Shown here one piece after another: positions 3,499-48,383 of a stretch of DNA of 64,000 bases. Position 1 is the stretch's first letter; each line of letters begins with the position of its first letter. The notes under the pieces were generated by a model. The model was not told the origin of the DNA. It saw only the letters and a program-made list of their open reading frames with translations, and did not search any database. A program made the position numbers and the translations under genes. The stretch lies in the sequence record PV112478.1; one strand, given 5' to 3'.

Positions 3499-3927
3499 AT
3501 GTCTAAAGCACGTAAGAAGAAACCCACTAAAAAGCCCGGTTACATGAAGTTACACGGGTTTCAATACATCAATGACATTATTCGGAAATCACCGAAGTTA
3601 CTCTCCGAAGCCGCCACTATAGTAGTGCAGTTCGACGCCTTAGATGAAAAAACTCTTTCTTTAGGGGAAATCCTGAAAGGGAAAGAAGAGATCAAGAAGA
3701 TAGCAGAGAAAGCACCCTCTATTCGAACGACGCTCGAAGAACTGAAAACCGATTTCGAAACGCTGGTTGCGACACCGGGTAAAAAGGAAGAAGAGCACTT
3801 CGCCGATTTGGTTGGACGTGCTGCTGAATTTATTTCAATGATCACTGAAGACGTGATTGCGCCGATGGCAGAGATCGCGGAGATTGTAGAAAAACGCATT
3901 AACCAAAAGGAAACTGTCAATGTCTGA
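3499..3927 (+). CDS. Hypothetical coiled-coil protein
   Basis: ORF track starts at TTG 3463. ATG 3499 with GAGG 8 nt upstream is the more likely start. Confidence 0.65.
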   Translation: MSKARKKKPTKKPGYMKLHGFQYINDIIRKSPKLLSEAATIVVQFDALDEKTLSLGEILKGKEEIKKIAEKAPSIRTTLEELKTDFETLVATPGKKEEEHFADLVGRAAEFISMITEDVIAPMAEIAEIVEKRINQKETVNV

Positions 3928-5644
3928 TTTTGAAAACGAACAGTCCGGTACTGAAGAAACCCCTACTATTCCTACCACGGGTGTAGGTATTCCGGTCACC
4001 AAACACGTTATCACTGACGACGTGTTTGAGGAAGCGCCGGTAGCAGTCTCCGATGAGACTGTTCAGGAAGACACTGTCACTCCGGCGGAAGAAGAAACCA
4101 AACCGGAAGAAGAGACGGAAGAGAAAGAAGAAGAAGAACATCTTCTCTTTGACGTCGAACCGAATAAAATCGTGATTGATCCGACTCGCCCTATCTTTGT
4201 CAGGATCGATCCTAATCAACGCGGCATTGCAGCGTTAAGTGTATTGCCCACGACGCGTGCTGACGCAGAGACGTTTGAAGAAAGTTTGAATAACGTCACT
4301 AACGAAGACCTTGAATGGATTCTCTCGACTCGTAACGCGACGGATTCAGCGTATCCCGGAAACGGTCTTCTGAAAGCGGCGATCCGTAACGGAGCAAAGT
4401 GGAAGACTCAGATCGAGAACCCGGCGACACCGATCCCGCTTTGTGATTACCGCAGTGCGTATAAGATCTTTGATCAACCGGCTACCAAAATTTCGGGTAT
4501 TGATGCAATCGATATGTTCACGGCCGGGACTAACTTGGGTCGTCCTGTCACGGTACCGCTGTGGCACTCTGGTTTCTGGGTGAAACTCCGTGCACCGTCG
4601 GCTGCATTCTTAGCGGATATCGACCGTGCCTTAGCCTTTTCACGTGAAGAGCTCGGACTAGAAGTCTTCGGGGCGATCGGGGCCAATGACCGTTTGATCT
4701 TTGACGAGATTCTCGTTGACGCGGCGTTGAAACTCGTTGTAGAAACCAATATCCCGATTGCGAAATCCCCGATGGAATTAAAAGAGGTTATTGACTTCTT
4801 TGATATCGACAACCTGATCTGGGGTATGGCATTAGCAGCATTCCCGGACGGTTGCGAGATCGCCATTCCGTGCCCGAGCTGTCGCGGTGTGAGTCACGTC
4901 AAAGCAAACCTTCTCCGTATGCGTTTCGTTGATGAGTCGCGTTTGACGCAGGTTCAGATCCGTCAGATGGCCAAAGGGATTAGCCATAAGACAACGCTGG
5001 AAGAATTGAAGAAATATAAGGAAGAGTTCCAAATCCTCAATACTCAGAAATGGGAATGGAACAAACGTACTTTCACCTTCCGTTCACCAACGATCGAAGA
5101 GTACTTAACTTCAGGTCGGGAATATATCACTTCGGTTTCCCGTGCGTTAACAGAAACGCTGCGTGACGACATTACTGACGACTACCGCCGTGGCCAGAGC
5201 ATGAAGTCAATCCTTAACACGGAAGAGACAGCGCGGTTCATGCACTTCATTCGTGAGATTCGTATCCCGAACACCAACGAAAAAGGTAACCCGGATAACT
5301 ACGGGATTGTTACCGATTCCCATGCTATCCTCGATATCATGCGTTATATTTCGGGTGACTTCGAAGCCAGTGACGGTTTAATCGTGGCAATCAATGATTT
5401 CATCAATGACGCCATCTGCACTATCATTGGATTCCCTAACGTCAATTGCCCGGCTTGTGGTAAATTCTATCTCTCGAAGACCGGGGAAGCGACAATTATT
5501 GTTCCGTTTAACCCTGCTGTGGGTTTTTTTATCCTTGCGCAACACAAGATTACGGAAGCGGGGTCGGAGCCACTGACGAATTTAATGACGTTAGGTCTGA
5601 CCGGTTTGCTATCCAAGGTATCGGCCAGCGAGGCTCAGGGTTAA
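3920..5644 (+). CDS. Probable baseplate hub assembly protein (T4 gp26/gp51-like), Zn-finger containing
   Basis: IPCPSC and NCPACG motifs, FTFRSPTIEEY segment and acidic N-terminal linker. Confidence 0.5.
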   Translation: MSDFENEQSGTEETPTIPTTGVGIPVTKHVITDDVFEEAPVAVSDETVQEDTVTPAEEETKPEEETEEKEEEEHLLFDVEPNKIVIDPTRPIFVRIDPNQRGIAALSVLPTTRADAETFEESLNNVTNEDLEWILSTRNATDSAYPGNGLLKAAIRNGAKWKTQIENPATPIPLCDYRSAYKIFDQPATKISGIDAIDMFTAGTNLGRPVTVPLWHSGFWVKLRAPSAAFLADIDRALAFSREELGLEVFGAIGANDRLIFDEILVDAALKLVVETNIPIAKSPMELKEVIDFFDIDNLIWGMALAAFPDGCEIAIPCPSCRGVSHVKANLLRMRFVDESRLTQVQIRQMAKGISHKTTLEELKKYKEEFQILNTQKWEWNKRTFTFRSPTIEEYLTSGREYITSVSRALTETLRDDITDDYRRGQSMKSILNTEETARFMHFIREIRIPNTNEKGNPDNYGIVTDSHAILDIMRYISGDFEASDGLIVAINDFINDAICTIIGFPNVNCPACGKFYLSKTGEATIIVPFNPAVGFFILAQHKITEAGSEPLTNLMTLGLTGLLSKVSASEAQG

Positions 5645-5661: not shown

Positions 5662-6048
5662 TTGGGGAACCTTTCCGCCAAAGTGGCGTTGCGCAGGGCG
5701 TACGACCTCGATAACGGGATTTACTCTGAAGCAGTAGATGCCAAAGTCCCTTTCTCTCTTATTGCGATGCATGAACCCGAAGCGGCTGCAAACAAAGGGA
5801 AATGGGATGAGTTACTCGAAAAATATCACACGCACCAGATTAAAGATTACTTCAACTTTACGTTTACAGATTGGGTGAGTCAACCTAATGATATGGTTGA
5901 AAAGCAAATCAACACTTCTATTCGGTGGCGTGAACGAGAAGTCAATGCTAAATCAGAAGAAACGAAAGAGTTAGAGGCACAACTTTCCCAACAGGGTATT
6001 ACGGTCCCTAACGTTCAAATGATGAAGGAAAAAGGCCATGGCCAATAA
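5662..6048 (+). CDS. Small protein following the hub-like gene, possible tail/baseplate chaperone partner
   Basis: ORF with TTG start. IKDYFNFTFTDWVSQP resembles C-terminal chaperone segments. Confidence 0.45.
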   Translation: MGNLSAKVALRRAYDLDNGIYSEAVDAKVPFSLIAMHEPEAAANKGKWDELLEKYHTHQIKDYFNFTFTDWVSQPNDMVEKQINTSIRWREREVNAKSEETKELEAQLSQQGITVPNVQMMKEKGHGQ

Positions 6049-6676
6049 GTTTGATAAAATCCAAAAGAAATCTCAGGAACTCTCTGACGCAGCAGATGCG
6101 GTAGCAGAGACGGCTGCTTCGGGTGAGAACGACAACGCTCCTGTTGCAGCAACCGTGGCAACCGAGTCTGCGGTAGGTGGCAGCGTGAAAGTAAGCACAG
6201 TCTCTGAAACTGCGGCTAAAACTTCGGCCGATGTTTACGCCGGGGAAAGTGATGCGGTCAAATTGATCATTGCACACCTCGAAGACTACGTTCTGAAAAT
6301 GGCACCGGAAAAAGCGCAGACTGAATCTTCACTGAAAGAAAATCAGAGTGTGCTCTATCGGACACTGGAGCAACTGGTTAATCTGGACAATGTTGCGGAT
6401 TTTGCGGTCTGCATGAAACGTCTGTTTGCGCTGGTTCGCAAATACGAAGACGGAGCCTTTGCGCCCAATATGCGTTTTCGTCGCCTGAGCCTTTTAGCGA
6501 AGGGTGATAAACAACTCGACAAATACATCGCGTTCGTCGACATGGTTTGCGCCTTTGCTACTCCCGCAGTGCGTAAAACTATCATTCAACGCTACAACCT
6601 GGCACGAGCGGCAGAATTCGCTAAACCGGAATATCGTGAGCGTCTGATTGAATTCGTGAAGGCGATCAGCGGTTAA
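6038..6676 (+). CDS. Hypothetical protein with Ala/Thr/Ser-rich N-terminus
   Basis: 212-aa ORF, AAGG RBS, optimised codons. Confidence 0.7.
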   Translation: MANKFDKIQKKSQELSDAADAVAETAASGENDNAPVAATVATESAVGGSVKVSTVSETAAKTSADVYAGESDAVKLIIAHLEDYVLKMAPEKAQTESSLKENQSVLYRTLEQLVNLDNVADFAVCMKRLFALVRKYEDGAFAPNMRFRRLSLLAKGDKQLDKYIAFVDMVCAFATPAVRKTIIQRYNLARAAEFAKPEYRERLIEFVKAISG

Positions 6677-6687
6677 TTACATAAACA

Positions 6688-6717
6688 CTCCTCTCTCCGC
6701 CTAGGCGGAGAGAGGAG
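6688..6717. terminator. Perfect 30-bp palindrome, bidirectional terminator
   Basis: CTCCTCTCTCCGCCT-AGGCGGAGAGAGGAG between convergent genes. Confidence 0.7.
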
Positions 6718-6724
6718 CTATGTA

Positions 6725-7678
6725 TTATTTTACCCAGACCTTTTCCCAGTTACTAAAGATCTCTCTAGTAATAGCTTCTTTAAGTTCTTTATCCGTTATA
6801 TTACCAAGATAAAAATAAATAAAATCTTCCATCATGACGCGTCTGCCGCTGTCGATTGCAGGGATCTTTTGCGCTGTTTGAACAACGTCAGTTTTAGGGA
6901 GATGTTCGCTTAAACTATTTTCTCCATTGAGGCGAGTAAAAGCTTCTTGTAACTTAGATAATTCTTCGGGATTATCCAAATCGATAATAAGCGTTTGACG
7001 TCCGACTGGGGTAGGCGTGAAATTAGGGTCTTGGCGTTCTGCTGGGTATAACGGTTGAATTGAGTACTGGGGAGCGTGGCGCCGGAAGTGATCTTCACTT
7101 ATGTCTTTATGCACACCAGGAAACATTTCATCTATCCGTTCTTTAATGTCTACGGGTACGTATTCTTCCCCGTCGCCATTATCGTTAAAAAGTAAATCAA
7201 AGCCAATGATAGAAACGGATCCCGGTTGGATTTCTTCACGGTCTGCTTCTGGGTCGAACTGATCATGTGGCTTAGGATATAAATATCGGCCGTTAGATAA
7301 CAACCGAGGTACGAAAGTATATTCCCCTTTGACAATACCTTCTTGGTAACAGAGCAAATGATCACGAGGGGTATTGGTATTTATCAGTGTTATTTTACAG
7401 GAAATAATCGTGCGGGAAATATCTAGTTTGAGTAATCCTGTGTTAGCGGTGAATTTTGCTTCGTTCAGTAATGGGAAGAAGCTATCGTCACGGTCATGCT
7501 TTTTGGCATCACTACGATTGATTACACTGACGTAAGCTAACCCGGATGATGGGCCGGTGATATCCCCGATCGCTTTCATCAGTTCTTTAATGGGAACACC
7601 TGTACTTTGTGACAACTCATGCAATGAAAAGTATACAACGATACTCTCGTTATTGACGATTTTTGCTTGATGATTCAT
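6725..7678 (-). CDS. Hypothetical protein (317 aa)
   Basis: Long ORF with AGGT RBS. Confidence 0.7.
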   Translation of the reverse strand: MNHQAKIVNNESIVVYFSLHELSQSTGVPIKELMKAIGDITGPSSGLAYVSVINRSDAKKHDRDDSFFPLLNEAKFTANTGLLKLDISRTIISCKITLINTNTPRDHLLCYQEGIVKGEYTFVPRLLSNGRYLYPKPHDQFDPEADREEIQPGSVSIIGFDLLFNDNGDGEEYVPVDIKERIDEMFPGVHKDISEDHFRRHAPQYSIQPLYPAERQDPNFTPTPVGRQTLIIDLDNPEELSKLQEAFTRLNGENSLSEHLPKTDVVQTAQKIPAIDSGRRVMMEDFIYFYLGNITDKELKEAITREIFSNWEKVWVK

Positions 7679-7781
7679 CTTCTATTTACCTTTTGTTAGT
7701 TAAGACCTCATGTTGGGTCAATAAGATAAAAGAGAAGCGTATTTTTTGTTATGAGATCAATTTATCACGAAGGGTCAGATT

Positions 7782-9746
7782 ATGTTTAATTTTGCCAAAG
7801 CCGCGTTTGGAATGGTTGAAGTAGAAGAAGCGAACGGAAAGATTAAGATCACCGCTATTCGTTCTAAGGACGCACTGAATGAAATCTATAATACCTGGCG
7901 TACCTCTCGTATCGAACAAAGTATGTTCACTAAGATTACGCCTTACAGTATCGAATTTTACAGTTTCTTCGCGGTAGAGTTTGTTTACATTCTCGATCAG
8001 ATTATCGCCAAACAGGGGCGAAGTATGATTGCGAAGAAAACATTGAAACAAGTGAAAGAAGGTATTCTCACTAATACTTGGATGCGGTCTACTCAGGTAG
8101 ATCACGACCCTATTTTGGATCGCAGTAAACTGAGCCTGTTTACCAAAAGCCCGCTGCGCCATCAAATGGAATTCATCGATCATTACGATACTGTTGTTCC
8201 TAAATGGCAGCTCAGCGGTTACTGTATGGCTATGAATACTGGGTCCGGGAAAACCTTGTCTTCGTTAATGATCGCAGAAATGCTCAATGTTGATATCATT
8301 ATCATGGTATCATTAAAAGCGTCTATTTATCGTGTCTGGGAAGATGCGATGCAAAATGATTACAAAAAGACGCCTGAGTACTGGGTTCAGGCACGAGATG
8401 GATCATTGCCCTCGGGAACATTACCGAAGTATTTAATCTACCATATGGAAGCCATTGGTAAATTACTGGAAGATTCTGGGCGATTCACCGGTAAGAAAAT
8501 TGCATTAATACTCGACGAATCTCACAAACTGAATGAGCTTAGTTCTCAGCGCACTCAAGATATTTTACAATTTTGTAAGCGTATACAACCCGTTACAACG
8601 CTATGGGCTTCCGCAACACCGATCAAAGCGTATGGTTCAGAAGCTATCCCAATGCTGGCGACGTTTGATAAGATGATGACGCTAGAGGCCATGGAAGCCT
8701 TTAAGAAACTATACGGGAAGTCAAGTAAGAAATGTTTTGACATCATACGTCATCGTATGGGTAATGTCATGTTTAAAGTGGAAATTGTTAAAACCAACCC
8801 AATCATCGAGAATGTTCCGATCAAACTGAAAGACCCGGAAAGGTTTTTACTGTCTACGTTGAAAATGGACATGAAAGACTATATTCTGGAGCGGATTGAG
8901 TATTGGAAAAAACTTGAGCCGCAAGTTAAGTTAGGTTACTATTCTGGCGTAGACAAATATGCTCGTACTGTTAAGACTAAAGAACAAGAAGCTCAATTAA
9001 AACAATATCGACGTTTTGTTGAGCAAATCTCTAAAACCACCGATTACCAAATGGTGAAAGAAGAGATGATGTTCTGTAATAAGTTTGAAAAGAATTTAAT
9101 CGAGCCTTTGCTGCGCGGGGAAGAGTTAAAGAATTTCCGCAGTTATAAATCAGTGATCAAATATTTACCGTTAAAAGTTCGTGGTGAGTGTTTAGGTAAC
9201 GTCGTAGGGAAGCGCAGAGAAGAAGTTACACTTGCTTTAATCGCGGAGTGTGATCTTCCTAAATACATTAAAGCGGCAGAGAAGAAAACTATCATTTTTA
9301 CTAGCTACGTGAAAGCGGTAGAAATGACAGAAAACTATCTGGTGTCGAAAGGATTCAAACCTGTAACCGTTTACGGGGAAGGTGAGGATTTAACTAAACA
9401 AGTAAAACGGTTCTTTGATGACAGCGGCATCAACCCATTAATTGCAACCTATCAAAGTTTGTCTACTTCGGTTCCCTTGATCGCAGCGAACGTTATTTTA
9501 GCCATCAACGCGCCATTCCGCGATTACATCATGGAACAGGCTATCGGTCGTATCGACCGTATTAACCAAAGCGCCCAAACCTATGTCTTTAAATTCTATT
9601 TGGAGACATCGGAACCTAACATCAGTAGTCGAACACTTGATATCTTAACCTGGTCGGAAGAACAAGTGAACCAAATACTTGGTGTGAAAGAGGAGGCGGT
9701 AGCCCTGGAAGCTTGGTCACTTGAAGCCATTCCGCAATACACGTAG
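7782..9746 (+). CDS. SF2 (SNF2/DEAD-like) helicase, probably virion-associated
   Basis: Walker A MNTGSGKT, Walker B LILDESH, motif III SAT and motif VI QAIGRIDR. Confidence 0.9.
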   Translation: MFNFAKAAFGMVEVEEANGKIKITAIRSKDALNEIYNTWRTSRIEQSMFTKITPYSIEFYSFFAVEFVYILDQIIAKQGRSMIAKKTLKQVKEGILTNTWMRSTQVDHDPILDRSKLSLFTKSPLRHQMEFIDHYDTVVPKWQLSGYCMAMNTGSGKTLSSLMIAEMLNVDIIIMVSLKASIYRVWEDAMQNDYKKTPEYWVQARDGSLPSGTLPKYLIYHMEAIGKLLEDSGRFTGKKIALILDESHKLNELSSQRTQDILQFCKRIQPVTTLWASATPIKAYGSEAIPMLATFDKMMTLEAMEAFKKLYGKSSKKCFDIIRHRMGNVMFKVEIVKTNPIIENVPIKLKDPERFLLSTLKMDMKDYILERIEYWKKLEPQVKLGYYSGVDKYARTVKTKEQEAQLKQYRRFVEQISKTTDYQMVKEEMMFCNKFEKNLIEPLLRGEELKNFRSYKSVIKYLPLKVRGECLGNVVGKRREEVTLALIAECDLPKYIKAAEKKTIIFTSYVKAVEMTENYLVSKGFKPVTVYGEGEDLTKQVKRFFDDSGINPLIATYQSLSTSVPLIAANVILAINAPFRDYIMEQAIGRIDRINQSAQTYVFKFYLETSEPNISSRTLDILTWSEEQVNQILGVKEEAVALEAWSLEAIPQYT

Positions 9747-9806: not shown

Positions 9807-10190
9807 TTAGTTTGCGTCTGTCAGATCAAGGAATTCAATTCCCATGAAAACACAGAGAGAAGGGTCAGTGGTCGAAGAGTTAGCGTACATGACCCGTATA
9901 CGCGTATCATTGAATCGTGAGACGGCCGCGGTAAACTCGATAGGGTGAATGTATTGCTCTGGACGAACCGGGTTCTTGAACGCTTTAGGGAACGCTGGGG
10001 GAAGGTTATCAACCTGATCGTAATTCCATTCTCCCATCGCCGCGTATGTCTTGAGCATGATCGCCGCTTTTTGTTTGGCTTCCGCGACACACGGCTTAGC
10101 GTATTTAACATCAGGGGAGTTGTACCCTTCTGCTGCAAAGGAGGTGGCGGAAATGGCGGAGAGAATCAATGCGATAAAAATGTTTTTCAT
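9807..10190 (-). CDS. Secreted/periplasmic protein (127 aa)
   Basis: Signal peptide MKNIFIALILSAISATSFA; two Cys in the mature part. Confidence 0.7.
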   Translation of the reverse strand: MKNIFIALILSAISATSFAAEGYNSPDVKYAKPCVAEAKQKAAIMLKTYAAMGEWNYDQVDNLPPAFPKAFKNPVRPEQYIHPIEFTAAVSRFNDTRIRVMYANSSTTDPSLCVFMGIEFLDLTDAN

Positions 10191-10202
10191 TTTCTTTTCC
10201 TT

Positions 10203-10544
10203 TTAAATGTTTTTGACTGTGCAGTAAAACCCAGGGATGATCTCAACTTTCTCTTCGCTGCGGCTTAGATAGCTGGCGCGCATTGATTTAAAAAATAACT
10301 TTTTAAATTCACTGTGAGAAAGAATAAGATACGACATTTTATTGTCTTCATTCTCTACGTAAGGAATGAAATCAACATCGGTAATTGATTTCAAAGATTT
10401 ATTGATAGATGATTTACTTTCATCGTCAATCTGGGCTTCAAGATTAATTTCAGTGAAGTAATCATTCTTTTTATTTTTAGGGGAGTTTTTGTAGGACAGT
10501 TTATAATGCCTGTCGGTTGTGATTGAACAACGTATTCTTTTCAT
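10203..10544 (-). CDS. Hypothetical protein
   Basis: 113-aa ORF, AAGG RBS. Confidence 0.55.
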   Translation of the reverse strand: MKRIRCSITTDRHYKLSYKNSPKNKKNDYFTEINLEAQIDDESKSSINKSLKSITDVDFIPYVENEDNKMSYLILSHSEFKKLFFKSMRASYLSRSEEKVEIIPGFYCTVKNI

Positions 10545-10569
10545 TTTAATACCTTATTGACAGTATTGT

Positions 10570-11106
10570 TTAAGCGTTGTACTCAATGGAGGTGATACCA
10601 AGATCTCGATAGAGACTGGCCGCTTTAAGCGCTTCAAAATACGTTAAGGTATCAAACCTTTCGCCGAGATCGTGAGCAAATTCGGTCGCAGAAGCGTAGC
10701 GCTGTGGACAGAACTCTTTGTAGAATAACCGTTGCTGTTCTGTGATATCGAAATGACTCGCGGCACAATTACGAAGATACGGTTCGGTGAATAATTCCCG
10801 TATCGTAACTATCGCGGTTGTATTGACTCGATGTGACGGAGCTTCGCTAATGATCGGGCTGATAAAGTAAAGTTCATTGCGGTCAAAACAGTAACTGAAA
10901 CCTTTGACGCCGATGAGATTAAGGTAGTAAAGAAAGTTTTCCCAGGGTGTCTTTTCACCTGGGGTTGGTACAGACGTCGACTGGAACTTAAAGTCGTACA
11001 TGTTGGTGTAATAAAAATTACATGCAGTGACGTTCTCAGATAAAAATCTTTTCGCGGCGAGTTCAACATGTTTCTTAACTTGGTCTTCTGTCAGGACAGT
11101 GTTCAT
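10570..11106 (-). CDS. Hypothetical protein
   Basis: 178-aa ORF, TAATG coupling to upstream gene. Confidence 0.65.
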   Translation of the reverse strand: MNTVLTEDQVKKHVELAAKRFLSENVTACNFYYTNMYDFKFQSTSVPTPGEKTPWENFLYYLNLIGVKGFSYCFDRNELYFISPIISEAPSHRVNTTAIVTIRELFTEPYLRNCAASHFDITEQQRLFYKEFCPQRYASATEFAHDLGERFDTLTYFEALKAASLYRDLGITSIEYNA

Positions 11107-15939: not shown

Positions 15940-16029
15940 TGGCAGAGAGTGAGAGATTCGAACTCTCGGTACCCTTTCGGATACACTCCCTTAGCAGGGG
16001 AGCGACTTAAACCGCTCATCCAACTCTCT
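15940..16029 (-). tRNA. tRNA-Ser(GCU)
   Basis: Cloverleaf, CTCCC-CTGCTAA-GGGAG, long variable arm, G73, CCA. Confidence 0.93.
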
Positions 16030-16038
16030 ATTAAAATG

Positions 16039-16112
16039 CGACTCTTCCAGGACTTGAACCTGGGACCTACAGCTTAACAGGCTGCCGTTCTAACCAACTG
16101 AACTAAAGAGTC
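16039..16112 (-). tRNA. tRNA-Asn(GUU), CCA not encoded
   Basis: GCAGC-CTGTTAA-GCTGT; ends G73-CAT. Confidence 0.9.
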
Positions 16113-16118
16113 ATTATT

Positions 16119-16193
16119 TGGCGGTGCTACGGAGAATTGAACTCCGGTCTCCTCCGTGACAGGGAGGTATCCTTTCCACTAGACGATAGCACC
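16119..16193 (-). tRNA. tRNA-Asp(GUC)
   Basis: CCTCC-CTGTCAC-GGAGG, G73, CCA. Confidence 0.93.
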
Positions 16194-16201
16194 TTTTTGT
16201 T

Positions 16202-16302
16202 TGGTTGTTCCCTTCCGGATTTGAACCGGCAACCTCCTGCTAAGCAGTGGGCGGCGCAGTGGCCGCCGATGCAGGCGCTCTACCTAGTTGAGCTACGAGA
16301 AC
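16202..16302 (-). ncRNA. tRNA-like RNA with 30-nt hairpin-containing anticodon loop, CCA end
   Basis: D arm GCTC/GAGC, stem CCTGC/GCAGG, T arm CCGG-TTCAAAT-CCGG and acceptor TGTTCTC/GGGAACA-A-CCA. Confidence 0.7.
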
Positions 16303-16310
16303 ATTGTATC

Positions 16311-16386
16311 TGGAGCAAGCAGCGAGGTTCGAACTCGCGACCTATGACTTGGAAGGACATCGCTCTACCGACTGAGCTATACTTGC
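16311..16386 (-). tRNA. tRNA-Gly(UCC)
   Basis: Loop CTTCCAA, U73, CCA; one T-T mismatch in the anticodon stem. Confidence 0.9.
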
Positions 16387-16391
16387 GCTAA

Positions 16392-16466
16392 TGGCAGAAG
16401 CGCCTAGATTCGAACTAGGGGTACCGAGATCAAAGCCCGGGGCCTTAACCGCTTGGCTACACTTCT
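16392..16466 (-). tRNA. tRNA-Gln(UUG)
   Basis: CCGGG-CTTTGAT-CTCGG, G73, CCA. Confidence 0.9.
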
Positions 16467-16473
16467 ATAAAAC

Positions 16474-16557
16474 TGGTGGGGAAGGGTAGATTCGAACTAC
16501 CGAAGCCGAAGCAGCAGATTTACAGTCTGACCCATTTGACCACTCTGGAACTTCCCC
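16474..16557 (-). tRNA. tRNA-Tyr(GUA)
   Basis: CAGA-CTGTAAA-TCTG, variable arm, A73, CCA. Confidence 0.93.
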
Positions 16558-16754
16558 TGAATTTGGGACCCGATTATTTCAGCGCTGCATTCTTTACTCT
16601 CGGGCCAAGGAGCACTATTAGTTTCTTCTCAGGGCGTATGGTTTCCCTCTGAGACTTGCGCAATATTTGAACAGGTTGATTGTTGTCTTAACATTCCGGA
16701 GAGAAAGTTACAATCTTTGTTCATAATATATTGAATTACTTAAATTTTGATTGC

Positions 16755-17096
16755 CTACCGGAATTTCCCTACAGATAACCAGATATCAGCAACCAAAAGA
16801 ATTTGTCCGCCATATTGGGTGACGGTATTCCAACCATTGCGTTTAGCGGCTGCATTGATCAGTGATAAAAATTGGTCTCTCCAAGGTCCTTGGTAAATCT
16901 GAGAGTGGTGTATTATTCGTATATTATTCGAACTCTCAATCTTATTAAGTTCTTCTGTTCCCCTGATCATATCGAAAACGTCTTTCGACTTAATCAAATA
17001 AGCCGGATCGTTAATCGTTCGATCAGAGGCTAAAGGAAGACGATAAGAAATATGGTCAATGTCTTCTTGACTGTGTGCAAATGTTACGTCATTCAT
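16755..17096 (-). CDS. Hypothetical protein splitting the tRNA cluster
   Basis: 113-aa ORF with AAGGT RBS. Confidence 0.6.
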   Translation of the reverse strand: MNDVTFAHSQEDIDHISYRLPLASDRTINDPAYLIKSKDVFDMIRGTEELNKIESSNNIRIIHHSQIYQGPWRDQFLSLINAAAKRNGWNTVTQYGGQILLVADIWLSVGKFR

Positions 17097-17177
17097 TTTA
17101 CTTTTACCTTATACAAGTTAGCGGTCTAAACCGAAATAGGAAGACCAACAAAAACTGTGGGATGAATAATAATGAAG

Positions 17178-17251
<74 letters not shown>

Positions 17252-17256
17252 GTAGA

Positions 17257-17341
17257 TGGTGCCCAGGGCGGGGTTCGAACCCGCACGCGATAAAGCGAGG
17301 GATTTTAAATCCCTTGTGTCTGCCGATTTCACCACCTGGGC
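17257..17341 (-). tRNA. tRNA-Leu(UAA)
   Basis: AGGGA-TTTAAAA-TCCCT, variable arm, A73, CCA. Confidence 0.93.
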
Positions 17342-17346
17342 AAATA

Positions 17347-17422
17347 TGGTGGGTCCAGCAGGTTTTGAACCTGCGACCAAGCGATTATGAGTCGCCTGCT
17401 CTAACCACTGAGCTATGGACCC
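17347..17422 (-). tRNA. tRNA-Ile2(CAU, lysidine type)
   Basis: GGCGA-CTCATAA-TCGCT; D and anticodon arms match enterobacterial ileX. A73, CCA. Confidence 0.88.
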
Positions 17423-20101: not shown

Positions 20102-20160
20102 AAATTCCTCAATTAAAAAGTGTCTTCTACATTAAAACAGTTTACCGTAAAAAAGCATAG

Positions 20161-20188
20161 GAGAGAGGAGGGAATTCCCTCCTCTCTC
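20161..20188 (-). terminator. Perfect 28-bp palindrome terminator ending the ncRNA unit
   Basis: GAGAGAGGAGGGAA-TTCCCTCCTCTCTC. Confidence 0.65.
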
Positions 20189-20309
20189 GAATAATTTATT
20201 TATCAAAAAGTGATCTCTTTGAAAAAGAAACTTTTGTGGTAAGAAGGGCGGAGGTAAGGATATAACCATCCCCAACACCGCCCATAGCCATTCAGCTATA
20301 AACAGAATT

Positions 20310-20485
20310 TAGCGCGACCTATCTAAGAATAAGATTGGAAGTTTTATTTTATAATCTAGTGCTCTACCGGCTGAGCTATCTGCCTCCAAGAAACACTCTA
20401 TGAATGTGTCCAGGTAGGCAGAGCGGAATTCGAATCCGCGACCTCTAGAATTCTTTCCGTAAAAGAAAGAAAGTTCAGTCCGCTA
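20310..20485 (-). ncRNA. Circularly permuted tRNA mimic B (YrlA/Y-RNA-like)
   Basis: Core 20355-20449 in the order T arm (GCGGA-TTCGAAT-TCCGC), closed acceptor (TCTGCCT/AGGCAGA), D arm (GCTC/GAGC), closed by TCTAG/CTAGA. Possible outer bulged helix TAGCGGAC/GTCGCGCTA. Confidence 0.7.
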
Positions 20486-20565
20486 TTTTACTGTCTACTC
20501 TTTATCTTTAAGCGTGTGAGGCGATAAGATAAAGTTAACACTAACCATCCGAGTAGCATTATGGG

Positions 20566-20659
20566 TGCATTGATGACTGCGTCTACCAATTCCGCCATTC
20601 TCCCATAGTTTGGTGGGAGAAGAAAGAGTCGAACTTCCAGTGGGGTCATCACACCTGCA
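20566..20659 (-). ncRNA. Circularly permuted tRNA mimic A (YrlA/Y-RNA-like)
   Basis: GATGAC...GGAAG-TTCGACT-CTTTC-TTCTCCCA-CCAAACTA-TGGGAGAA-TG-GCG-GAATTGGTAGA-CGC-A-GTCATC. Confidence 0.7.
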
Positions 20660-20740
20660 ACACGGACTAACAATAAAGATAAGGTTGGCCTCAATCTTTA
20701 TTATCAATGGGCACTCGTGAGAATACCCATTACTAACACA

Positions 20741-21508
20741 TTAAGCAGTGAAGTTTTTCAGAATCACGTTGGTCAGTACTTCGCCGATAGAGCCCTGAAC
20801 AACTTCGGTGCAGTTTGCACGCATACGTGCATTAGTGACTTCAACGATCAGTTCGTCGATATCACGCAGTGCGTTGGCTTTCTGCATCGGGGTGCAGGCG
20901 CCGGAATAGCTTTTACGGGTGAAGCTACCGATTACGACGGTGCTTTCCGATTCTTTCACCTGTGCAGGGTGGTGGTCGGTAGCCGGCGCCAGGATAACCG
21001 GAGTGAGCACTTTCTCGGTTTTCGTCGTGACTTCGTCCGTCACGGTACGGAATCCGTAGGTGCTGTTGCTATCGCGTTCCCATTGTTTGGACGAATCCAG
21101 AGTAGGGGCAGCGGCGATCAGTTTGCGAAGTTCCGCCAGGCGTTTTTCCAGGCCCAGGAGTTCATCTACCGGCACTCCAGAAACGAGGACTTCGCCTTTG
21201 AACATGATGTCTGCTTTTGCTACCTGGTTAGTCAGGGCTTTTTGCAGGCGAAGGTCTTCTGCCGTGGCGAAATATTCGAAGAGGTACTGCAGCGTTTCGG
21301 CTACAGTGGTGATCACTGCCTTGCTGGTACTTTCGCTTTTTTCGATCGCGGCGTTGGCGTCGTTGTCTTCGTGCAGTTTCAGGGTTTTATCAAACCCGCT
21401 GAAATATTCAGCCGATTTATTGAATTTTTTACTGGCGTCTTCGATCAGGACTTGCACTTGTTTGGTGCGAGTGGGTTCTGCTGCCAATACTTCGTGTAAC
21501 TTAGCCAT
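20741..21508 (-). CDS. Conserved 255-aa helical protein upstream of the permuted tRNA mimics
   Basis: AAGGA RBS, strongly optimised codons, coiled-coil-like pattern; function unassigned. Confidence 0.8.
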   Translation of the reverse strand: MAKLHEVLAAEPTRTKQVQVLIEDASKKFNKSAEYFSGFDKTLKLHEDNDANAAIEKSESTSKAVITTVAETLQYLFEYFATAEDLRLQKALTNQVAKADIMFKGEVLVSGVPVDELLGLEKRLAELRKLIAAAPTLDSSKQWERDSNSTYGFRTVTDEVTTKTEKVLTPVILAPATDHHPAQVKESESTVVIGSFTRKSYSGACTPMQKANALRDIDELIVEVTNARMRANCTEVVQGSIGEVLTNVILKNFTA

Positions 21509-34107: not shown

Positions 34108-36075
34108 TTAGATACGTTTTAAACGCATTTCCTTATCGACATCCAACAACAGATAGTCGAAGGGATGGTTCTCTTTAATCGGGTCATACGAGCCCGGAGA
34201 GAGCATGTTTTGATACTGCTTCTCGTAAGCACATTTCACCGAGAGACTCCGTCCAGACATGATATCGGATTTCGTAGCGAAGTAACGACCCGTCCCTTTC
34301 TTCGGTAAACGGAAATCGCCGTTCTTCGGATCACGCGACATCATGGCGTAAAGGACAATTTCCACAATCGCCAGGTTAACCGAGAACTTACGGTTCGTCA
34401 TTTCCGAAATGTCTTTCAACGCCATCGCCAGAATGTCAGGGTCGGTTAAGTCATACCGTAACCGCTCTTTCGATTCCTTACTCGACATGAAGATATTGGA
34501 TTTTAACTCCATCATCATCTCGAGCGTCGAGCTATGACGTTCCGGGAATTTCAGAATACTTTCTGAAGGGTCCCAGTTTTTCAGATCAACCCGAATCTTA
34601 CGCCCTAAGTTCTGGAAACCGTAATCCTTCATGTGCTGAATAAAGGCAGCGGTTAAGAACGGTTTATAAGACGAATGACTTGTAGCGATCAATTCTTCCT
34701 TGATAGTCCCTTTGACATCGCCTTGGTGAACGATGATCATGACGTCTTCTACGCCTGAAATACGGCGGAGGTCATTTTGACTGAACTCGGTCATCGCATG
34801 AATATCGGAAAGACGTGGCAGATACGCCATATCGATTTCGATTTCCACATGATGATTCCAGATCGCCTCAGACAGCATCAGCTCAGAAATATCCGACGCA
34901 TTGACCATATAGTCCTTATAGAATGGATCGATTTCAAAACCTTCCGTCTCAGCAGAGCGCAGAAGGTGTTTCGTCGAGATAACGTCCTGAGAGACCTTTT
35001 CGTTCTGGGTTACGGTTGCGGCATGTCCCAGGTTAGTGCCTCGTTGCACAGATCGCGCCAACTGGCCCATACAGGTGCTACAGACTACGCCGTCATCAGG
35101 ATGCCAACAACACGCCACATTCCGCAGTTGAATCGTTTTCCCTACCAGGAAGACGTCTCCTGCCTTAATGGCTTTGAGTTGTCCTGTTTCAGTGAGATAA
35201 AACTTACCGGGTAAGATATTATCCAGTTCGTTTTTCTTCACCGTCCACGGGATCGTTTCCGTACTTCCACAATCCCCCATCCAAATGCTCTTCACAACGT
35301 ACGTAAAGAGCTGCAGCTCACGGTTATAATACTCCGTCTGCTTAACAGGATCGTCCGTCGCCTGGAGCGCTTTAGAGGCGTCTCTGGAGATCATGGCGAA
35401 GAAACTGGCCCGATGTATCCCTTCGAAGAAACCCGCATTGACGACGTTAGGGAAGATGCTCTGATCAACTTCAGAACACCACCCTCGTTTCCCGATGACC
35501 TGATGGAACTGCGCCATCTTCGTCTGACCGATGTGACAGGCCAGCGCCATACTGTTCCCTTGTAAGAAGGGGTCAGTGGCAATCACACGGGAAATCACCC
35601 CGTATGCACGGTTGACCCCGCCAGGGCTCGGTTCCATGTTATAGAGCGCATTCTGGATCTCAGGGCGGTCGTAGATATCCAATAACGTCAGAACATCAAC
35701 GGTATCGATATACGCCTCGCCGCGCGTCGTGAAGGCATTGTGTAACCGGTTATTGCCGCGATAGATAGCAGCCTGTAGGTTTTCAATGTCTTCATGCGGA
35801 TACGCTTCGAGAACAACCTCCTTCATGCGGTTGAGGATTTTTAATTCCAACCCCGGCGAATCAAAGTCATCCCAGAGATGATGACGAATACTGATTTGTG
35901 CGTCAGGGTAGTCTCGAAATACCTCCCAGAAATACCAACTAACAATCGTCTGCGACCAATCTGTAATGATCTCGCCATCACTGAAGACTAAACGAAATCG
36001 ATCATGGTCGTGTTCCTTTTTCCAGAGTTCTTCCTCGGTCCAGTGTACGATGTCTTCTGCCCACACAACTTGCAT
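34108..36075 (-). CDS. rpoC: Non-virion RNAP beta-prime C-terminal subunit (gp74-like)
   Basis: DCGS...CCWHPDDGVVCSTCMG, NLGHAA...SQDVISTKH. Confidence 0.88.
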   Translation of the reverse strand: MQVVWAEDIVHWTEEELWKKEHDHDRFRLVFSDGEIITDWSQTIVSWYFWEVFRDYPDAQISIRHHLWDDFDSPGLELKILNRMKEVVLEAYPHEDIENLQAAIYRGNNRLHNAFTTRGEAYIDTVDVLTLLDIYDRPEIQNALYNMEPSPGGVNRAYGVISRVIATDPFLQGNSMALACHIGQTKMAQFHQVIGKRGWCSEVDQSIFPNVVNAGFFEGIHRASFFAMISRDASKALQATDDPVKQTEYYNRELQLFTYVVKSIWMGDCGSTETIPWTVKKNELDNILPGKFYLTETGQLKAIKAGDVFLVGKTIQLRNVACCWHPDDGVVCSTCMGQLARSVQRGTNLGHAATVTQNEKVSQDVISTKHLLRSAETEGFEIDPFYKDYMVNASDISELMLSEAIWNHHVEIEIDMAYLPRLSDIHAMTEFSQNDLRRISGVEDVMIIVHQGDVKGTIKEELIATSHSSYKPFLTAAFIQHMKDYGFQNLGRKIRVDLKNWDPSESILKFPERHSSTLEMMMELKSNIFMSSKESKERLRYDLTDPDILAMALKDISEMTNRKFSVNLAIVEIVLYAMMSRDPKNGDFRLPKKGTGRYFATKSDIMSGRSLSVKCAYEKQYQNMLSPGSYDPIKENHPFDYLLLDVDKEMRLKRI

Positions 36076-38345
36076 TATTCATCCTCTTCGAGCGCGTCGT
36101 TATCTTCTTCTGGAATTTCAAACTCATCTTCCAGTTCCGGGTCTTCATCGTAGTTGATTTCTATTTCAGGAATGTCGGAGAAATCGTCCCTGTAACCAGG
36201 CTTGGTTCGGGTTGCCGCTCGGATTTTCTCTTCTTCCACTGGGGTGATGTTATCCACGTTCATGTACGCCATTTTCACCCCTGAGCAATAGAGTGTATTG
36301 TTCAGATAGTTCAGCGCCATGCTGTTACCCAGCGGGATCTCGTTACGGTCAATACAGAAATCGAGATCAACAGGGTTTTCCGCAGAGATAATCTTACTCC
36401 ATTGGTATTCCTGCGCTTTCGGGTTATTGGCACGATCCAGCATATCAGCCGCCCACTTCCCGCCAACGATACCAACATAGTTTCGAATCTCCGATTCACC
36501 GAAGAGACGGAACGGGATTTTACGGAAAGGTAAGTTGAAACGCTCACGACCAGAAGGCTTGGTAGGAACACCATGCACCTGTCGTTTAGCGATATCCACT
36601 GCACCCCAGTCATGGCCGGTTTTCTCAAGGACAATGACCTTGATTTCCCCGATCATCGTTGGCTTCGTACTGGTAACACGTTCGCCCAGATCATTGATCC
36701 AGGTAACATGCTCAACCGGTTCAGGGAATGCCTCACGTAAGCGACGACATTGTTCTGCCCCAAGACCCGGTGTATACGGCGGCATATAGGCGAAAATCGC
36801 ATCTTCTGCCACGGCATCAACGTGTTGTTTAATTCGATCAAACGACCAGTTTTGCTGATCAATCTTATCGAGATAAACAGGCGTCGCCGCCCGATAATAA
36901 CGACGAAGTAATTCGTAACATTCGAGATACGTCTCCTTACTCTTACTCTCCTTCAGCATGGCACGAATCGGTTTCTCCACCCGCTGCTCTGCGATGTAAT
37001 TACAATACTGCTCGATGAACATACTGGGGTTCATTCGGTTTGCAATACTGAAACCGTCAACGATCAAGTCAGCAGTCGTTCCGTCTTCATAACGCGGCAT
37101 TTTAGCACGAGGTTTCTTCGCGCAGATAACGCCTTTCATGCCATAGTCAGTCGAGAGCTTATAACCGATAGTGGGGGTGATGTCGTACATGAAAGAGATC
37201 TTCACGTACAGCGTGGGGATGCTCTGTTTCTTTAAACGGAAACGTCGTTTCCCTTCCGGGGCCGAAGTGAAGACGATTGCATCGGTGATAAGACGATGGA
37301 GTTTCTTCGACAGCGCGGGTTCCTTTCCTTGCCCTGCTTCACGACGCAGTTGACGATAGACTTTGACGATCGCATCCATGTAACGCAATTTCGCTTTCCA
37401 CAGACGTGTGATCGCATCATCTTCACCGTATTCTTTCCCGGTGAACTCCGGCATGGCATCCAGTTTATCCCCATCAGACATCCACAGGTCGATATCAACG
37501 ACTCGCGCATTCTCAACGCCTGCTTCGATAAAATATTTCTCATCGAAATAGTAGTCGTAATCTTCCATGGCTTCCGCCGTCATTTCGACACAACCTAACA
37601 TGTCGTCATATTCGCGCAGCGCCATTAAGAGTCCGTCTTTACGAATCTGCTCACCTGGTAACGGAAGAGGACGATAACGTTTACTGTTCCCGTAGGTATT
37701 GATCGGATACTTACCTTTAGGAACAATAATCGTGACCTCGCCAAAGCCCGTGGTCTGATTCTCCTTACACCATTCTTCTGACACCAGAAAACCGTCTTCG
37801 GTCACAGCGTGATGACTTTGGAAGGTTGTTTTGGTACGGGTAGCATAAATGTAATCGCCGTCTGGCGTTACCCCCGGAGAACGATTGAGTCGAACTCCTC
37901 GTTGAAGAATCTCGCCAGGCCGCATGAGTTTTTGATTCTCTATGACCGGGACGAATTCAAAGCCGAAGCTAGTGTGATGAGAACAATAGGTATCGTAGTC
38001 CAGGTAGTCGTATTCACGCGTTTCCATGTTACGTACGATAACAATCTTTTTCGGGTTACTTTTAAAACTCTCGGAACCTCGACCCACCTCAAACTTGTCG
38101 ATTACCGCAATCACTTCCGCAGGGAACTGAACGCGACAACCGAAAGTATATTCGGCATACTCTTTCTCAACACCCACGAAAAAGCGGGGTCGATTGATCC
38201 CTTTTGTGATCAGTTTTTGCTGTATCTGCGATGCCAGCATAACCAAACGAGAAGGCGATGTACAAACTGCCCAGGGTCCGAGGTGAGTGGCTGTCCCTAT
38301 CAGATCAACATCCATTTGATGTTCATTAGGTAACTTTTCTCTCAT
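36075..38345 (-). CDS. rpoB: Non-virion RNAP beta C-terminal subunit (gp71-73-like), uninterrupted
   Basis: GYKLSTDYGMKGVI, RMNPSM and RLFGESE; acidic tail. Confidence 0.9.
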   Translation of the reverse strand: MREKLPNEHQMDVDLIGTATHLGPWAVCTSPSRLVMLASQIQQKLITKGINRPRFFVGVEKEYAEYTFGCRVQFPAEVIAVIDKFEVGRGSESFKSNPKKIVIVRNMETREYDYLDYDTYCSHHTSFGFEFVPVIENQKLMRPGEILQRGVRLNRSPGVTPDGDYIYATRTKTTFQSHHAVTEDGFLVSEEWCKENQTTGFGEVTIIVPKGKYPINTYGNSKRYRPLPLPGEQIRKDGLLMALREYDDMLGCVEMTAEAMEDYDYYFDEKYFIEAGVENARVVDIDLWMSDGDKLDAMPEFTGKEYGEDDAITRLWKAKLRYMDAIVKVYRQLRREAGQGKEPALSKKLHRLITDAIVFTSAPEGKRRFRLKKQSIPTLYVKISFMYDITPTIGYKLSTDYGMKGVICAKKPRAKMPRYEDGTTADLIVDGFSIANRMNPSMFIEQYCNYIAEQRVEKPIRAMLKESKSKETYLECYELLRRYYRAATPVYLDKIDQQNWSFDRIKQHVDAVAEDAIFAYMPPYTPGLGAEQCRRLREAFPEPVEHVTWINDLGERVTSTKPTMIGEIKVIVLEKTGHDWGAVDIAKRQVHGVPTKPSGRERFNLPFRKIPFRLFGESEIRNYVGIVGGKWAADMLDRANNPKAQEYQWSKIISAENPVDLDFCIDRNEIPLGNSMALNYLNNTLYCSGVKMAYMNVDNITPVEEEKIRAATRTKPGYRDDFSDIPEIEINYDEDPELEDEFEIPEEDNDALEEDE

Positions 38346-47762: not shown

Positions 47763-48383
47763 TTACAGTTTCTCACCTAACGGACTGAAGGGGTCAATGC
47801 CTTCATCAATCGCGTTATTGATCACGTCAAAGGTCGCGCAAAGCTCCATCTGCTGTTCCAACGTCAGATGTTCTTCGCCCTCAACATCACAAGCGCCATA
47901 GGTGTATTCCACCCACCACTCCCCTTTACTGTTTTTCTCTGCGACTCCATTGCGAATCGCTTTCCAGTAAGGGTCGTTTTCCGGCGTAGTCTCAAACACA
48001 AAGGCGTCGCGTTTAGAACCCCAGCCGTGCGTACTCTGGCGATCCCAAAGTGAACGGGTTCTCGGACTACTGAGTAACCAACGTCGCATCTTCAACGGTG
48101 CACTGGCCACTTCCTCAGGACTGTCCAAGAACTGAATGATGTTATCACGATAGAGACCGCGTTTACTGCTGTTCAAACGCTTGAGCTGACTTCTGACTGT
48201 GTCATCATAAAGCGATGAAATCATTGTCTTCGCCGAGTTAAGCATTCCTTTCGCCCGGTCAGACAGATTGGAACTAAAACGCTCCAGTCTATCGTAAGAG
48301 CGCTGAATGTCCTCACGATCGGGAAGACCGAAGGCCGCTGCCCTAAAAACAGACTCACCGCCATCGATAATTGCAATTTTCAA
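47763..48383 (-). CDS. Conserved hypothetical protein
   Basis: 206-aa ORF with TTG start overlapping the upstream TGA. Confidence 0.7.
   Translation of the reverse strand: MKIAIIDGGESVFRAAAFGLPDREDIQRSYDRLERFSSNLSDRAKGMLNSAKTMISSLYDDTVRSQLKRLNSSKRGLYRDNIIQFLDSPEEVASAPLKMRRWLLSSPRTRSLWDRQSTHGWGSKRDAFVFETTPENDPYWKAIRNGVAEKNSKGEWWVEYTYGACDVEGEEHLTLEQQMELCATFDVINNAIDEGIDPFSPLGEKL

Follow-up and report, generated by a model that had tools for sequence, protein, structure and literature searches.

Tandem tRNA-shaped RNA elements downstream of DUF7873 genes in Klebsiella jumbo phages and in bacteria

Y RNAs of the YrlA family have been described as resembling circularly permuted transfer RNAs (tRNAs) with closed acceptor stems. 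They are recognised by their Rfam model, by a Ro60-binding motif in the terminal stem (GNCGAAN0-1G, 5' strand) and by a neighbouring Ro60/Rsr (TROVE) gene. The YrlA of M. smegmatis, which has an acceptor stem of 7 base pairs (bp), is cut by RNase P and gets CCA in vivo. The subject of this work is a pair of tRNA-shaped RNA elements, A and B, located in tandem 3' of a gene for a DUF7873 protein in a 64,000-nucleotide (nt) stretch of sequence record PV112478.1, hereafter referred to as the window. The 511-nt region around element A is 100% identical to Klebsiella phage LPKP23 (blastn, distant mode). Because YrlA has the same architecture, the kind of RNA is already known; the protein to which it is linked here is a different one.

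The likeness to YrlA comprises a stem formed from the two ends of the RNA, an anticodon-stem-like helix, the variable region, the T arm, the closed acceptor stem-loop and the D arm, as well as U8-A14, the 15:48 covariation and frequent occurrence in pairs. However, DUF7873-linked pairs usually begin with a Leu-like module that has a 3-bp D stem, and their neighbour is DUF7873, not Ro60. Searches against Rfam at the gathering threshold returned only tRNAs, and no YrlA in 20 bacterial loci. Under permissive settings, YrlA (RF02553) is the only family that resembles a module over its whole length, although below threshold: element B matches it end to end (37.6 bits, E 1.3e-6, threshold 69), and its homologues reach 31-36 bits, whereas element A does not match it even at E<=10.

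The other recurring weak match is the two-piece transfer-messenger RNA (tmRNA) model (RF01850, beta_tmRNA), in which the order of T arm, acceptor 3' strand, N-CCA, intervening loop and acceptor 5' strand is the same. Nonetheless, this match reaches 20-25 bits against a threshold of 84 and is limited to the T arm, acceptor and loop (model positions 86-150). Moreover, the modules have a full D arm, lack pseudoknots and a tag reading frame, and are each closed by their own flanks within ~140-180 nt; ARAGORN called no tmRNA in the window. Skipping-rope, DUF2693-FD and salivarius-1 RNAs also contain an acceptor/T-arm-like core that forms a tRNA elbow and are presumed to be protein-binding scaffolds, but they have other connectivity, constitute separate Rfam families and do not match the region at permissive thresholds.

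Structure and conservation of element A

The core of element A extends from 20650 to 20572, with the minus strand as the RNA sense strand, and the element is composed of the following parts:

20650-20645, minus strand: first strand of the closing helix, GATGAC
20644-20639, minus strand: variable region of 6 nt, CCCACT
20638-20622, minus strand: T arm, GGAAG-TTCGACT-CTTTC
20621-20615, minus strand: acceptor 3' strand, TTCTCCC
20614-20605, minus strand: acceptor loop, A-CCA-AACTAT (ACCAAACTAT)
20604-20598, minus strand: acceptor 5' strand, GGGAGAA
20597-20596, minus strand: TG (U8 G9)
20595-20579, minus strand: class-II (tRNA-Leu-type) D arm, GCG-GAATTGGTAGA-CGC
20578, minus strand: single A (position 26)
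20577-20572, minus strand: second strand of the closing helix, GTCATC
20539-20675, minus strand: whole element, in which 20675-20651 pairs with 20571-20539 in a long imperfect outer stem topped by the tRNA-like head; minimum free energy (MFE) -57 kcal/mol, z = -2.8

In tRNA order, GATGAC is equivalent to the 3' strand and GTCATC to the 5' strand of an anticodon-stem-like helix, and the discriminator A is followed by CCA. Depending on counting, the acceptor has 7 bp with a 10-nt loop or forms an 8-bp stem, TTCTCCCA/TGGGAGAA, with an 8-nt loop, CCAAACTA. Thus, the T arm, the acceptor hairpin with CCA in register, the D arm and the GATGAC/GTCATC closure, from which a circularly permuted tRNA mimic had originally been predicted, are all present on the minus strand, and the MFE fold reproduces a three-way head on a long imperfect stem. 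The D arm had been called Leu-type, and this label is correct, since the D arm/5' half of element A shares 21 of 23 bases with annotated tRNA-Leu genes in all 5426 E. coli genomes; the D arm of the phage's own tRNA-Leu(UAA) differs from it.

Both strands of the window were searched with a pattern scanner that demands a T-loop motif, a 5/5 T stem, a 7/7 acceptor, a D stem with GG in the loop and a 5/5 closing stem. Only two matches were obtained, element A and element B (20449-20355), both on the minus strand and 200 nt apart, whereas 200 dinucleotide-preserving shuffles gave none. Two adjacent matches in the real sequence against zero in the shuffles indicate that the elements are not products of chance. 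Element B displays the same permutation as element A with a different sequence, as had been foreseen.

Twelve further records of ~300-kb Klebsiella jumbo phages, including vB_KpM_FBKp24 (phiKp24), are 95-99.8% identical to the window over the 511-nt region (blastn). Since these 13 near-identical records contain too little variation for covariation, protein-anchored synteny was used instead. Two divergent syntenic homologues, L094 (a 264-kb contig) and L095, encode a DUF7873 protein that is 62% identical and keep element A. In these homologues, the T stem GGAAG/CTTTC is changed to GTAGG/CCTAC or GGAGG/CCTCC, the acceptor strand GGGAGAA to GGGGAGA, which is re-paired, and the closing helix GATGAC/GTCATC to GATAAC/GTTATC, while the long outer stem retains its shape with an unrelated sequence.

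The same picture emerges from a wider set of relatives. Across 52 elements aligned with a covariance model, standard pairs occupy 96.5% of the cells, compared with 58% in shuffled alignments, and double-sided changes occur at 20 of 20 pairs. The covariation score is 0.94 vs. 0.21 after shuffling (0 of 500 shuffles reach 0.94) and does not exceed 0.175 when the partners are slid by 1-3 columns. Tertiary features of tRNA that are demanded by neither the scanner nor the model pairs are retained as well: of 182 distinct elements, 173 have U8, 170 have A14 and 163 have bases at 15:48 that fit a Levitt pair (G15-C48 or A15-U48), compared with 90.8 expected under independence. Unconstrained RNAalifold on 14 actinomycete loci recovered both modules, each on a long outer helix, together with a conserved motif, CUCAGAUUCUCGCUC, 3' of the first module that recalls the phage linker described below. 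These data show element A to be a conserved and structured RNA that is shaped like a tRNA and closed at its acceptor end, and covariation in relatives, which had been proposed as a check of the permuted tRNA mimic, supports that reading.

The proposal that the flanks of element A form an outer helix fared less well. TTATCTTTA (plus strand 20502-20510) and TAAAGATAA (plus strand 20674-20682) are indeed perfectly complementary 9-mers. However, the MFE fold prefers two local hairpins and another long stem, and in our reading of the alignment, only 7 of the 9 pairs are left in L094 and L095, the loss of two being uncompensated. As the preferred fold, the TTATCTTTA/TAAAGATAA helix was therefore rejected; it is possible but unsupported.

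Coupling of the elements to DUF7873

The gene that accompanies the elements is located as follows:

20741-21508, minus strand: DUF7873 gene, 255 amino acids (aa), Pfam PF25283 (E 2.7e-72), directly upstream of element A

The structured region lies directly 3' of this gene, on the same strand, and extends over ~480 nt, with the core of element A beginning 91 nt past the stop codon. DUF7873 was found with tblastn in 75 phage records, which include Klebsiella phages, Ralstonia phage phiRSL1, phages of Rhizobium, Vibrio, Gordonia and Arthrobacter, and cyanophages. A permuted tRNA-like element was present just 3' of the gene, on the same strand, in five of five extra loci (one uncultured viral contig and four of the 75 phage records). 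In phiRSL1, there are two elements, of which the first has a Leu-type D arm like that of element A and the second is B-like. At least one element was detected in 66 of 79 loci from IMG/VR viral contigs, every one on the strand of the gene.

For more sensitive searches, a covariance model, R1, was built from eight in-register A-type sequences; in mixed alignments of A and B made with MAFFT (A5, A6), the variable region and the D arm were misregistered, and these alignments were not used for it. R1 scores element A of the window at 52.6 bits and element B at 52.3 bits (E ~5e-14), and it recovers elements in most of the remaining loci. Its only class of false positives consists of junctions between tandem tRNA genes, such as the one at 17302-17392 of the window (34 bits). 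Bacterial DUF7873 loci number more than 563, and the best 80, mostly from Actinomycetes and Cyanobacteria with some from Chloroflexi and Myxococcota, were analysed. They gave 99 R1 matches, all on the gene strand and 60-700 nt 3' of DUF7873, usually as a tandem pair.

When phage and bacterial loci with usable coordinates were pooled (140 DUF7873 loci), the scanner found one or two elements in each of 122. As many as 166 of its 174 matches fell within the 1-kb same-strand zone downstream of the gene, which makes up 8.1% of the bases searched, and the first element began a median of 124 nt past the stop codon. The order of the elements follows a rule as well: of the 37 loci that hold two elements and no more, 28 have an A-type element (3-bp D stem) ahead of a B-type element (4-bp D stem). 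The window conforms to it, since element A carries the A-type signature (U8 followed by G9/A9, a 3-bp D stem with an 11-nt loop, A14 A15, a variable region ending in U48 and a discriminator A) and the element after it is of the B type, its D stem having 4 bp. In all, some 150 of the phage and bacterial loci examined have elements in this position, and the elements are genetically coupled to DUF7873 as a fixed A/B pair.

In the bacterial-looking locus L098, DUF7873 is accompanied only by one A-type and one B-type element; the genes around them resemble ordinary bacterial ones, and none for a tRNA is close by. The conserved protein neighbours in the 80 bacterial loci are only lineage-specific ones (Ser/Thr kinases, a TIR protein, ADP-ribosylglycohydrolase). 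In a Herpetosiphon locus (L166), the ADP-ribosylglycohydrolase gene starts ~90 nt after DUF7873, at the place of an element. The 295-aa gene downstream of the module in the window matches no family, and its only relatives are 21% identical and occur in Serratia phages that lack the module; for example, in Serratia phage Moabite, a relative without a DUF7873 match, no element lies beside the homologue of this gene.

DUF7873 itself is a large family, with 2,339 clusters at 50% identity in an exhaustive search. The 150 best matches listed are all single-domain proteins and nearly all ~250 aa long. The AlphaFold2 model (predicted local distance difference test, pLDDT, of 92) consists of long helices and two long beta-hairpins, and a Foldseek comparison with PDB and BFVD gave no significant match, Ro60 structures included. 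At the sequence level, nothing was found in a PDB profile search, PHROGs, PADLOC or NCBIfam, and the searchable literature yielded no mention of the family.

Element B and the surrounding sequence

Besides element A, the noncoding region contains several further structured or conserved parts:

20730-20707, minus strand: hairpin ATGGGTA..TGCCCAT between the DUF7873 stop codon and element A, from the MFE fold; sequence kept in L094 and L095
20698-20681, minus strand: hairpin AAGATTG-AGGC-CAACCTT followed by a U-rich stretch, upstream of element A, from the MFE fold; sequence kept in L094 and L095
20498-20531, minus strand: linker TATCTTATCGCCTCACACGCTTAAAGATAAAGAG between A and B, which contains the 3' word of the proposed flank helix; near-invariant in the window, FBKp24, L094 and L095
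20310-20485, minus strand: whole element B, with outer stem TAGCGGACT/AGGTCGCGCTA, a side hairpin and a tRNA-like core (20449-20355) whose 30-nt acceptor loop forms a hairpin
20247-20283, minus strand: hairpin GGGCGG...CCGCCC with loop motif GATGGTTATATC, downstream of element B; kept in L094 and L095
20161-20188, minus strand: the sole terminator-like site downstream, from a consensus scan

A motif related to the linker, AUUCUC(G/C)C(U/A)C, is found 3' of the first module in other phages and in actinomycetes. The AGGC loop of the hairpin at 20681-20698 and the word GCCUCA of the linker (20516-20521, minus strand) are changed jointly to AGAC and GUCUCA in L094 and L095, which represents a single event. 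To judge from the sequences, this joint change could reflect a long-range or pseudoknot contact that brackets element A.

In the acceptor loop of element B (20414-20385, minus strand) and in those of many phage elements (L013 at 3952-4044, L019, L021, L023, and L094 at 7053-7146), there is a hairpin with the conserved stem (R)CAUUC...GAGUG(Y). In the long acceptor loops with this hairpin, CCA is paired to UGG. The CAUUC...GAGUG pattern aligns with the intervening segment of the beta-proteobacterial two-piece tmRNA model RF01850, and the presence of such a hairpin in both B-type elements and RF01850 suggests a shared processing signal.

ARAGORN reports a tRNA-Stop(tta) at 20413-20496 on the minus strand, which is built from the T arm and the 3' acceptor strand of element B, and both the genome annotation of phiKp24 and a preprint treat it as a suppressor, tRNA-Sup-TTA. 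That a genuine suppressor tRNA lies here was rejected: the acceptor pairs at 5 of 7 positions, a proper D arm is lacking, and the corresponding position yields no such call in L094 or L095. Very probably, the annotated suppressor tRNA (TTA) of phiKp24-like jumbo phages is a miscall caused by the permuted element B.

Further downstream, the GGGCGG...CCGCCC hairpin overlaps a small open reading frame (20132-20278, minus strand), which is annotated as a hypothetical protein in relatives. This reading frame may not be real, and the hairpin may instead be a third part of the RNA. The terminator-like site at 20161-20188 would be a possible 3' end of a transcript that comprises DUF7873, A and B, and a promoter scan of the interval between the DUF7873 gene and the RNA elements revealed no convincing promoter.

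With respect to the wider surroundings, nine clustered tRNA genes (15940-17422, minus strand) are found a few kb downstream of the module, and nearly all neighbouring genes are likewise on the minus strand. Phage DUF7873 genes are usually located inside or beside tRNA clusters. In the uncultured phage L096, genes for a PolyA_pol/CCA-adding-type nucleotidyltransferase, an RNA ligase (PF09414) and a zinc-ribbon protein (5760-9392, plus strand) lie directly upstream of DUF7873 (10001-10765) within a tRNA cluster, a neighbourhood that looks like one for tRNA maintenance or repair. A tRNA-like sequence at 16206-16302 (minus strand) of the window, missed by ARAGORN, scores 38.9 bits with the Rfam tRNA model and has 28 nt where 5 are expected in the anticodon loop; it could be an intron-containing or otherwise expanded tRNA. 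In phiRSL1 (L011, 4566-4689) and Vibrio phage K479 (L013, 2162-2287), comparable over-long 'tRNAs' lie close to the module. Also encoded in the window are a homologue of chimallin, a divergent family-B DNA polymerase and fragments like beta/beta' of a multisubunit RNA polymerase (49918-51819, 53140-55356, 36075-38345 and 48380-49834, all on the minus strand), which together indicate a nucleus-forming (chimallivirus-type) jumbo phage; published work describes phiKp24 as nucleus-forming.

Possible functions and their meaning

On balance, element A is probably the first of two tandem tRNA-mimic modules 3' of DUF7873 that act as a protein-binding scaffold, form a ribonucleoprotein (RNP) with DUF7873 and engage tRNA enzymes. 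In its fold, each module resembles a tRNA without the lower half: it has the T arm, the 7-bp acceptor-like hairpin, the D arm, U8-A14 and the 15:48 Levitt pair, a loop closes its acceptor end, and in place of the anticodon arm there is a helix that extends into a long imperfect stem made of the module's own 5' and 3' flanks, as in the Y-RNA/YrlA design. The A/B pair would be co-transcribed with DUF7873, since no convincing promoter lies between them and the sole terminator-like site is at 20188-20161. DUF7873 might hold the stems and conserved linkers, as Ro60 holds Y RNA, and the tRNA-shaped head might recruit or occupy RNase P, the CCA-adding enzyme, TruB/Dus, synthetases or tRNA-targeting nucleases.

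Several points weigh against this explanation. For DUF7873, neither an RNA-binding fold nor any relative was recognised in PDB, BFVD, PHROGs, PADLOC or NCBIfam, so that the RNP is proposed from synteny. The constant adjacency on the same strand would fit a cis-acting role in the 3' untranslated region equally well. Some DUF7873 loci are element-free by both the scanner and the covariance model; for example, the Herpetosiphon loci L166, L174 and L175 (around 3735-4823) contain no R1 match at E<=0.001. It should also be noted that the alignment used for covariation was fitted to the model, so that its percentage of paired cells is somewhat inflated, and that the slid controls share this bias.

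It seems unlikely that element A is primarily a processed, split and chargeable tRNA mimic. According to this explanation, RNase P would cut the loop 5' of G+1, AACUAU would be trimmed back to CCA, and the two pieces, held together by the acceptor and outer stems, would be leucylated by the host leucyl-tRNA synthetase (LeuRS) and serve as an amino-acid carrier or a synthetase sponge. Element A does possess the features required by RNase P (a 7-bp acceptor with a T arm, U-1/G+1, and A73-CCA in register), and M. smegmatis YrlA sets the precedent for RNase P cleavage followed by CCA addition. The identity elements of E. coli LeuRS are A73, A15-U48, G18G19 and A20a, the anticodon arm and long variable arm being dispensable; element A carries this set, including A73 and A15:U48, along with the D arm and adjoining bases that so closely match E. 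coli tRNA-Leu. In bacteria, N-CCA stands at the start of the loop in 35 of ~100 elements, compared with ~1.6% expected, and the discriminator is A in 67 of 80 elements with a 3-bp D stem.

However, the CCA in register that had been noted in the loop of element A is not shared by the whole family: it is replaced by ACTT in L095, the nearest divergent homologue, and bacterial A-type loops mostly have only 4-9 nt (e.g., ACGC, ACACGC), including most of those in the 35 elements with N-CCA, so that a free CCA end is not conserved. Since CCA is not conserved across the family, cleavage of the loop and charging would not be the core function. Given that element A has what RNase P needs and the LeuRS identity set, they might be a lineage-specific possibility, and by analogy, the originally proposed release of a CCA-ended half by loop cleavage is plausible in this phage lineage. 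Religation to a permuted tRNA, the other outcome proposed, is unlikely, as an anticodon loop is lacking and the closing helix is prolonged by a long imperfect stem.

About as unlikely is an explanation in which the modules are cis-acting, tRNA-shaped signals for 3'-end processing or stability of the DUF7873 mRNA, comparable to tRNA punctuation or MALAT1-mascRNA, with no role in trans. The elements are always on the strand of the gene and start close to its stop codon, no convincing promoter intervenes, and the only terminator-like site is downstream of B, all of which would be expected of such signals. Nonetheless, this would leave it difficult to justify two types of module, with type-specific D arms and discriminators and in a fixed order across phyla. 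The long outer stems and conserved linker motifs also exceed what a processing signal needs, and full tertiary mimicry of a tRNA, including the D arm and the Levitt pair, is kept.

Less probable still is a reading of A and B as ordinary Y RNAs (YrlA/YrlB) whose Ro60 (Rsr) partner is encoded by the host or at another place in the phage genome. Such a reading would agree with the common topology, with the rank of B and its homologues as the best sub-threshold YrlA matches (31-38 bits), with the frequent pairing of Y RNAs and with the fact that some jumbo phages encode TROVE proteins. However, B remains far under the 69 bits of the family threshold, and A shows no match at all. On the minus strand of 20300-20760, there is no exact match to GNCGAAN0-1G; matches with one mismatch lie within the tRNA-like cores or in the hairpin upstream of the stem of A, and none is on the 5' strand of a terminal stem. 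No TROVE domain was detected in the 20 largest open reading frames of the window, with ~236 kb of the phage genome outside the window not scanned, or among Pfam-annotated neighbours within +/-6-10 kb in L094-L099, and the conserved neighbour, DUF7873, has a model unlike any PDB structure of Ro60. Since the Rfam threshold is not reached and both the Ro60 motif and an adjacent TROVE gene are missing, elements A and B are not simply YrlA.

That element A represents a genuine permuted tRNA gene like those of Cyanidioschyzon, matured by circularisation and re-opening, or a decaying relic of tandem tRNAs is hardly credible: as in the permuted genes of red and green algae and Thermofilum, its 3' half precedes its 5' half and its acceptor and closing stems are fully complementary, and YrlA-like RNAs are thought to descend from dimeric tRNAs, but those genes yield tRNAs with anticodon loops through an endonuclease specific for the bulge-helix-bulge motif and a ligase, whereas here the hosts are bacteria, in which the required splicing endonuclease is not known, no anticodon loop is present, the flanks in the window, L094 and L095 form a long imperfect helix and cannot supply a 7-nt loop with U33, and conservation with compensatory changes across phyla excludes a relic.

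The scaffold in an RNP with DUF7873 thus remains the explanation that we favour for element A. A more far-reaching proposal, which is put forward tentatively and with some doubt, is that DUF7873 and the two tandem tRNA mimics constitute a widespread RNP system, a second, Ro60-independent class of Y-RNA-like particle, with which phages might manipulate or protect tRNA handling during infection and in which, for this phage lineage, element A might also be opened by RNase P to become an anticodon-less, CCA-ended, leucine-accepting split mimic. Neither Rfam 15 nor the literature searched, including a 2026 preprint that adds three other tRNA-mimic families, contains the partnership with DUF7873, the A/B tandem, the absence of Ro60 features or a comparable breadth of occurrence, although a description elsewhere is possible.

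Y-like tRNA mimicry has so far been tied to Ro60, and the same RNA design is now linked to another protein, in phages and in at least four bacterial phyla. This finding provides the first functional lead for DUF7873 and defines two RNA families that are absent from Rfam 15. Since the phage module is often found within or beside a tRNA cluster, and once beside a CCA-adding-type enzyme and an RNA ligase, it may bear on how phages sustain translation in the face of attacks on tRNAs by the host.

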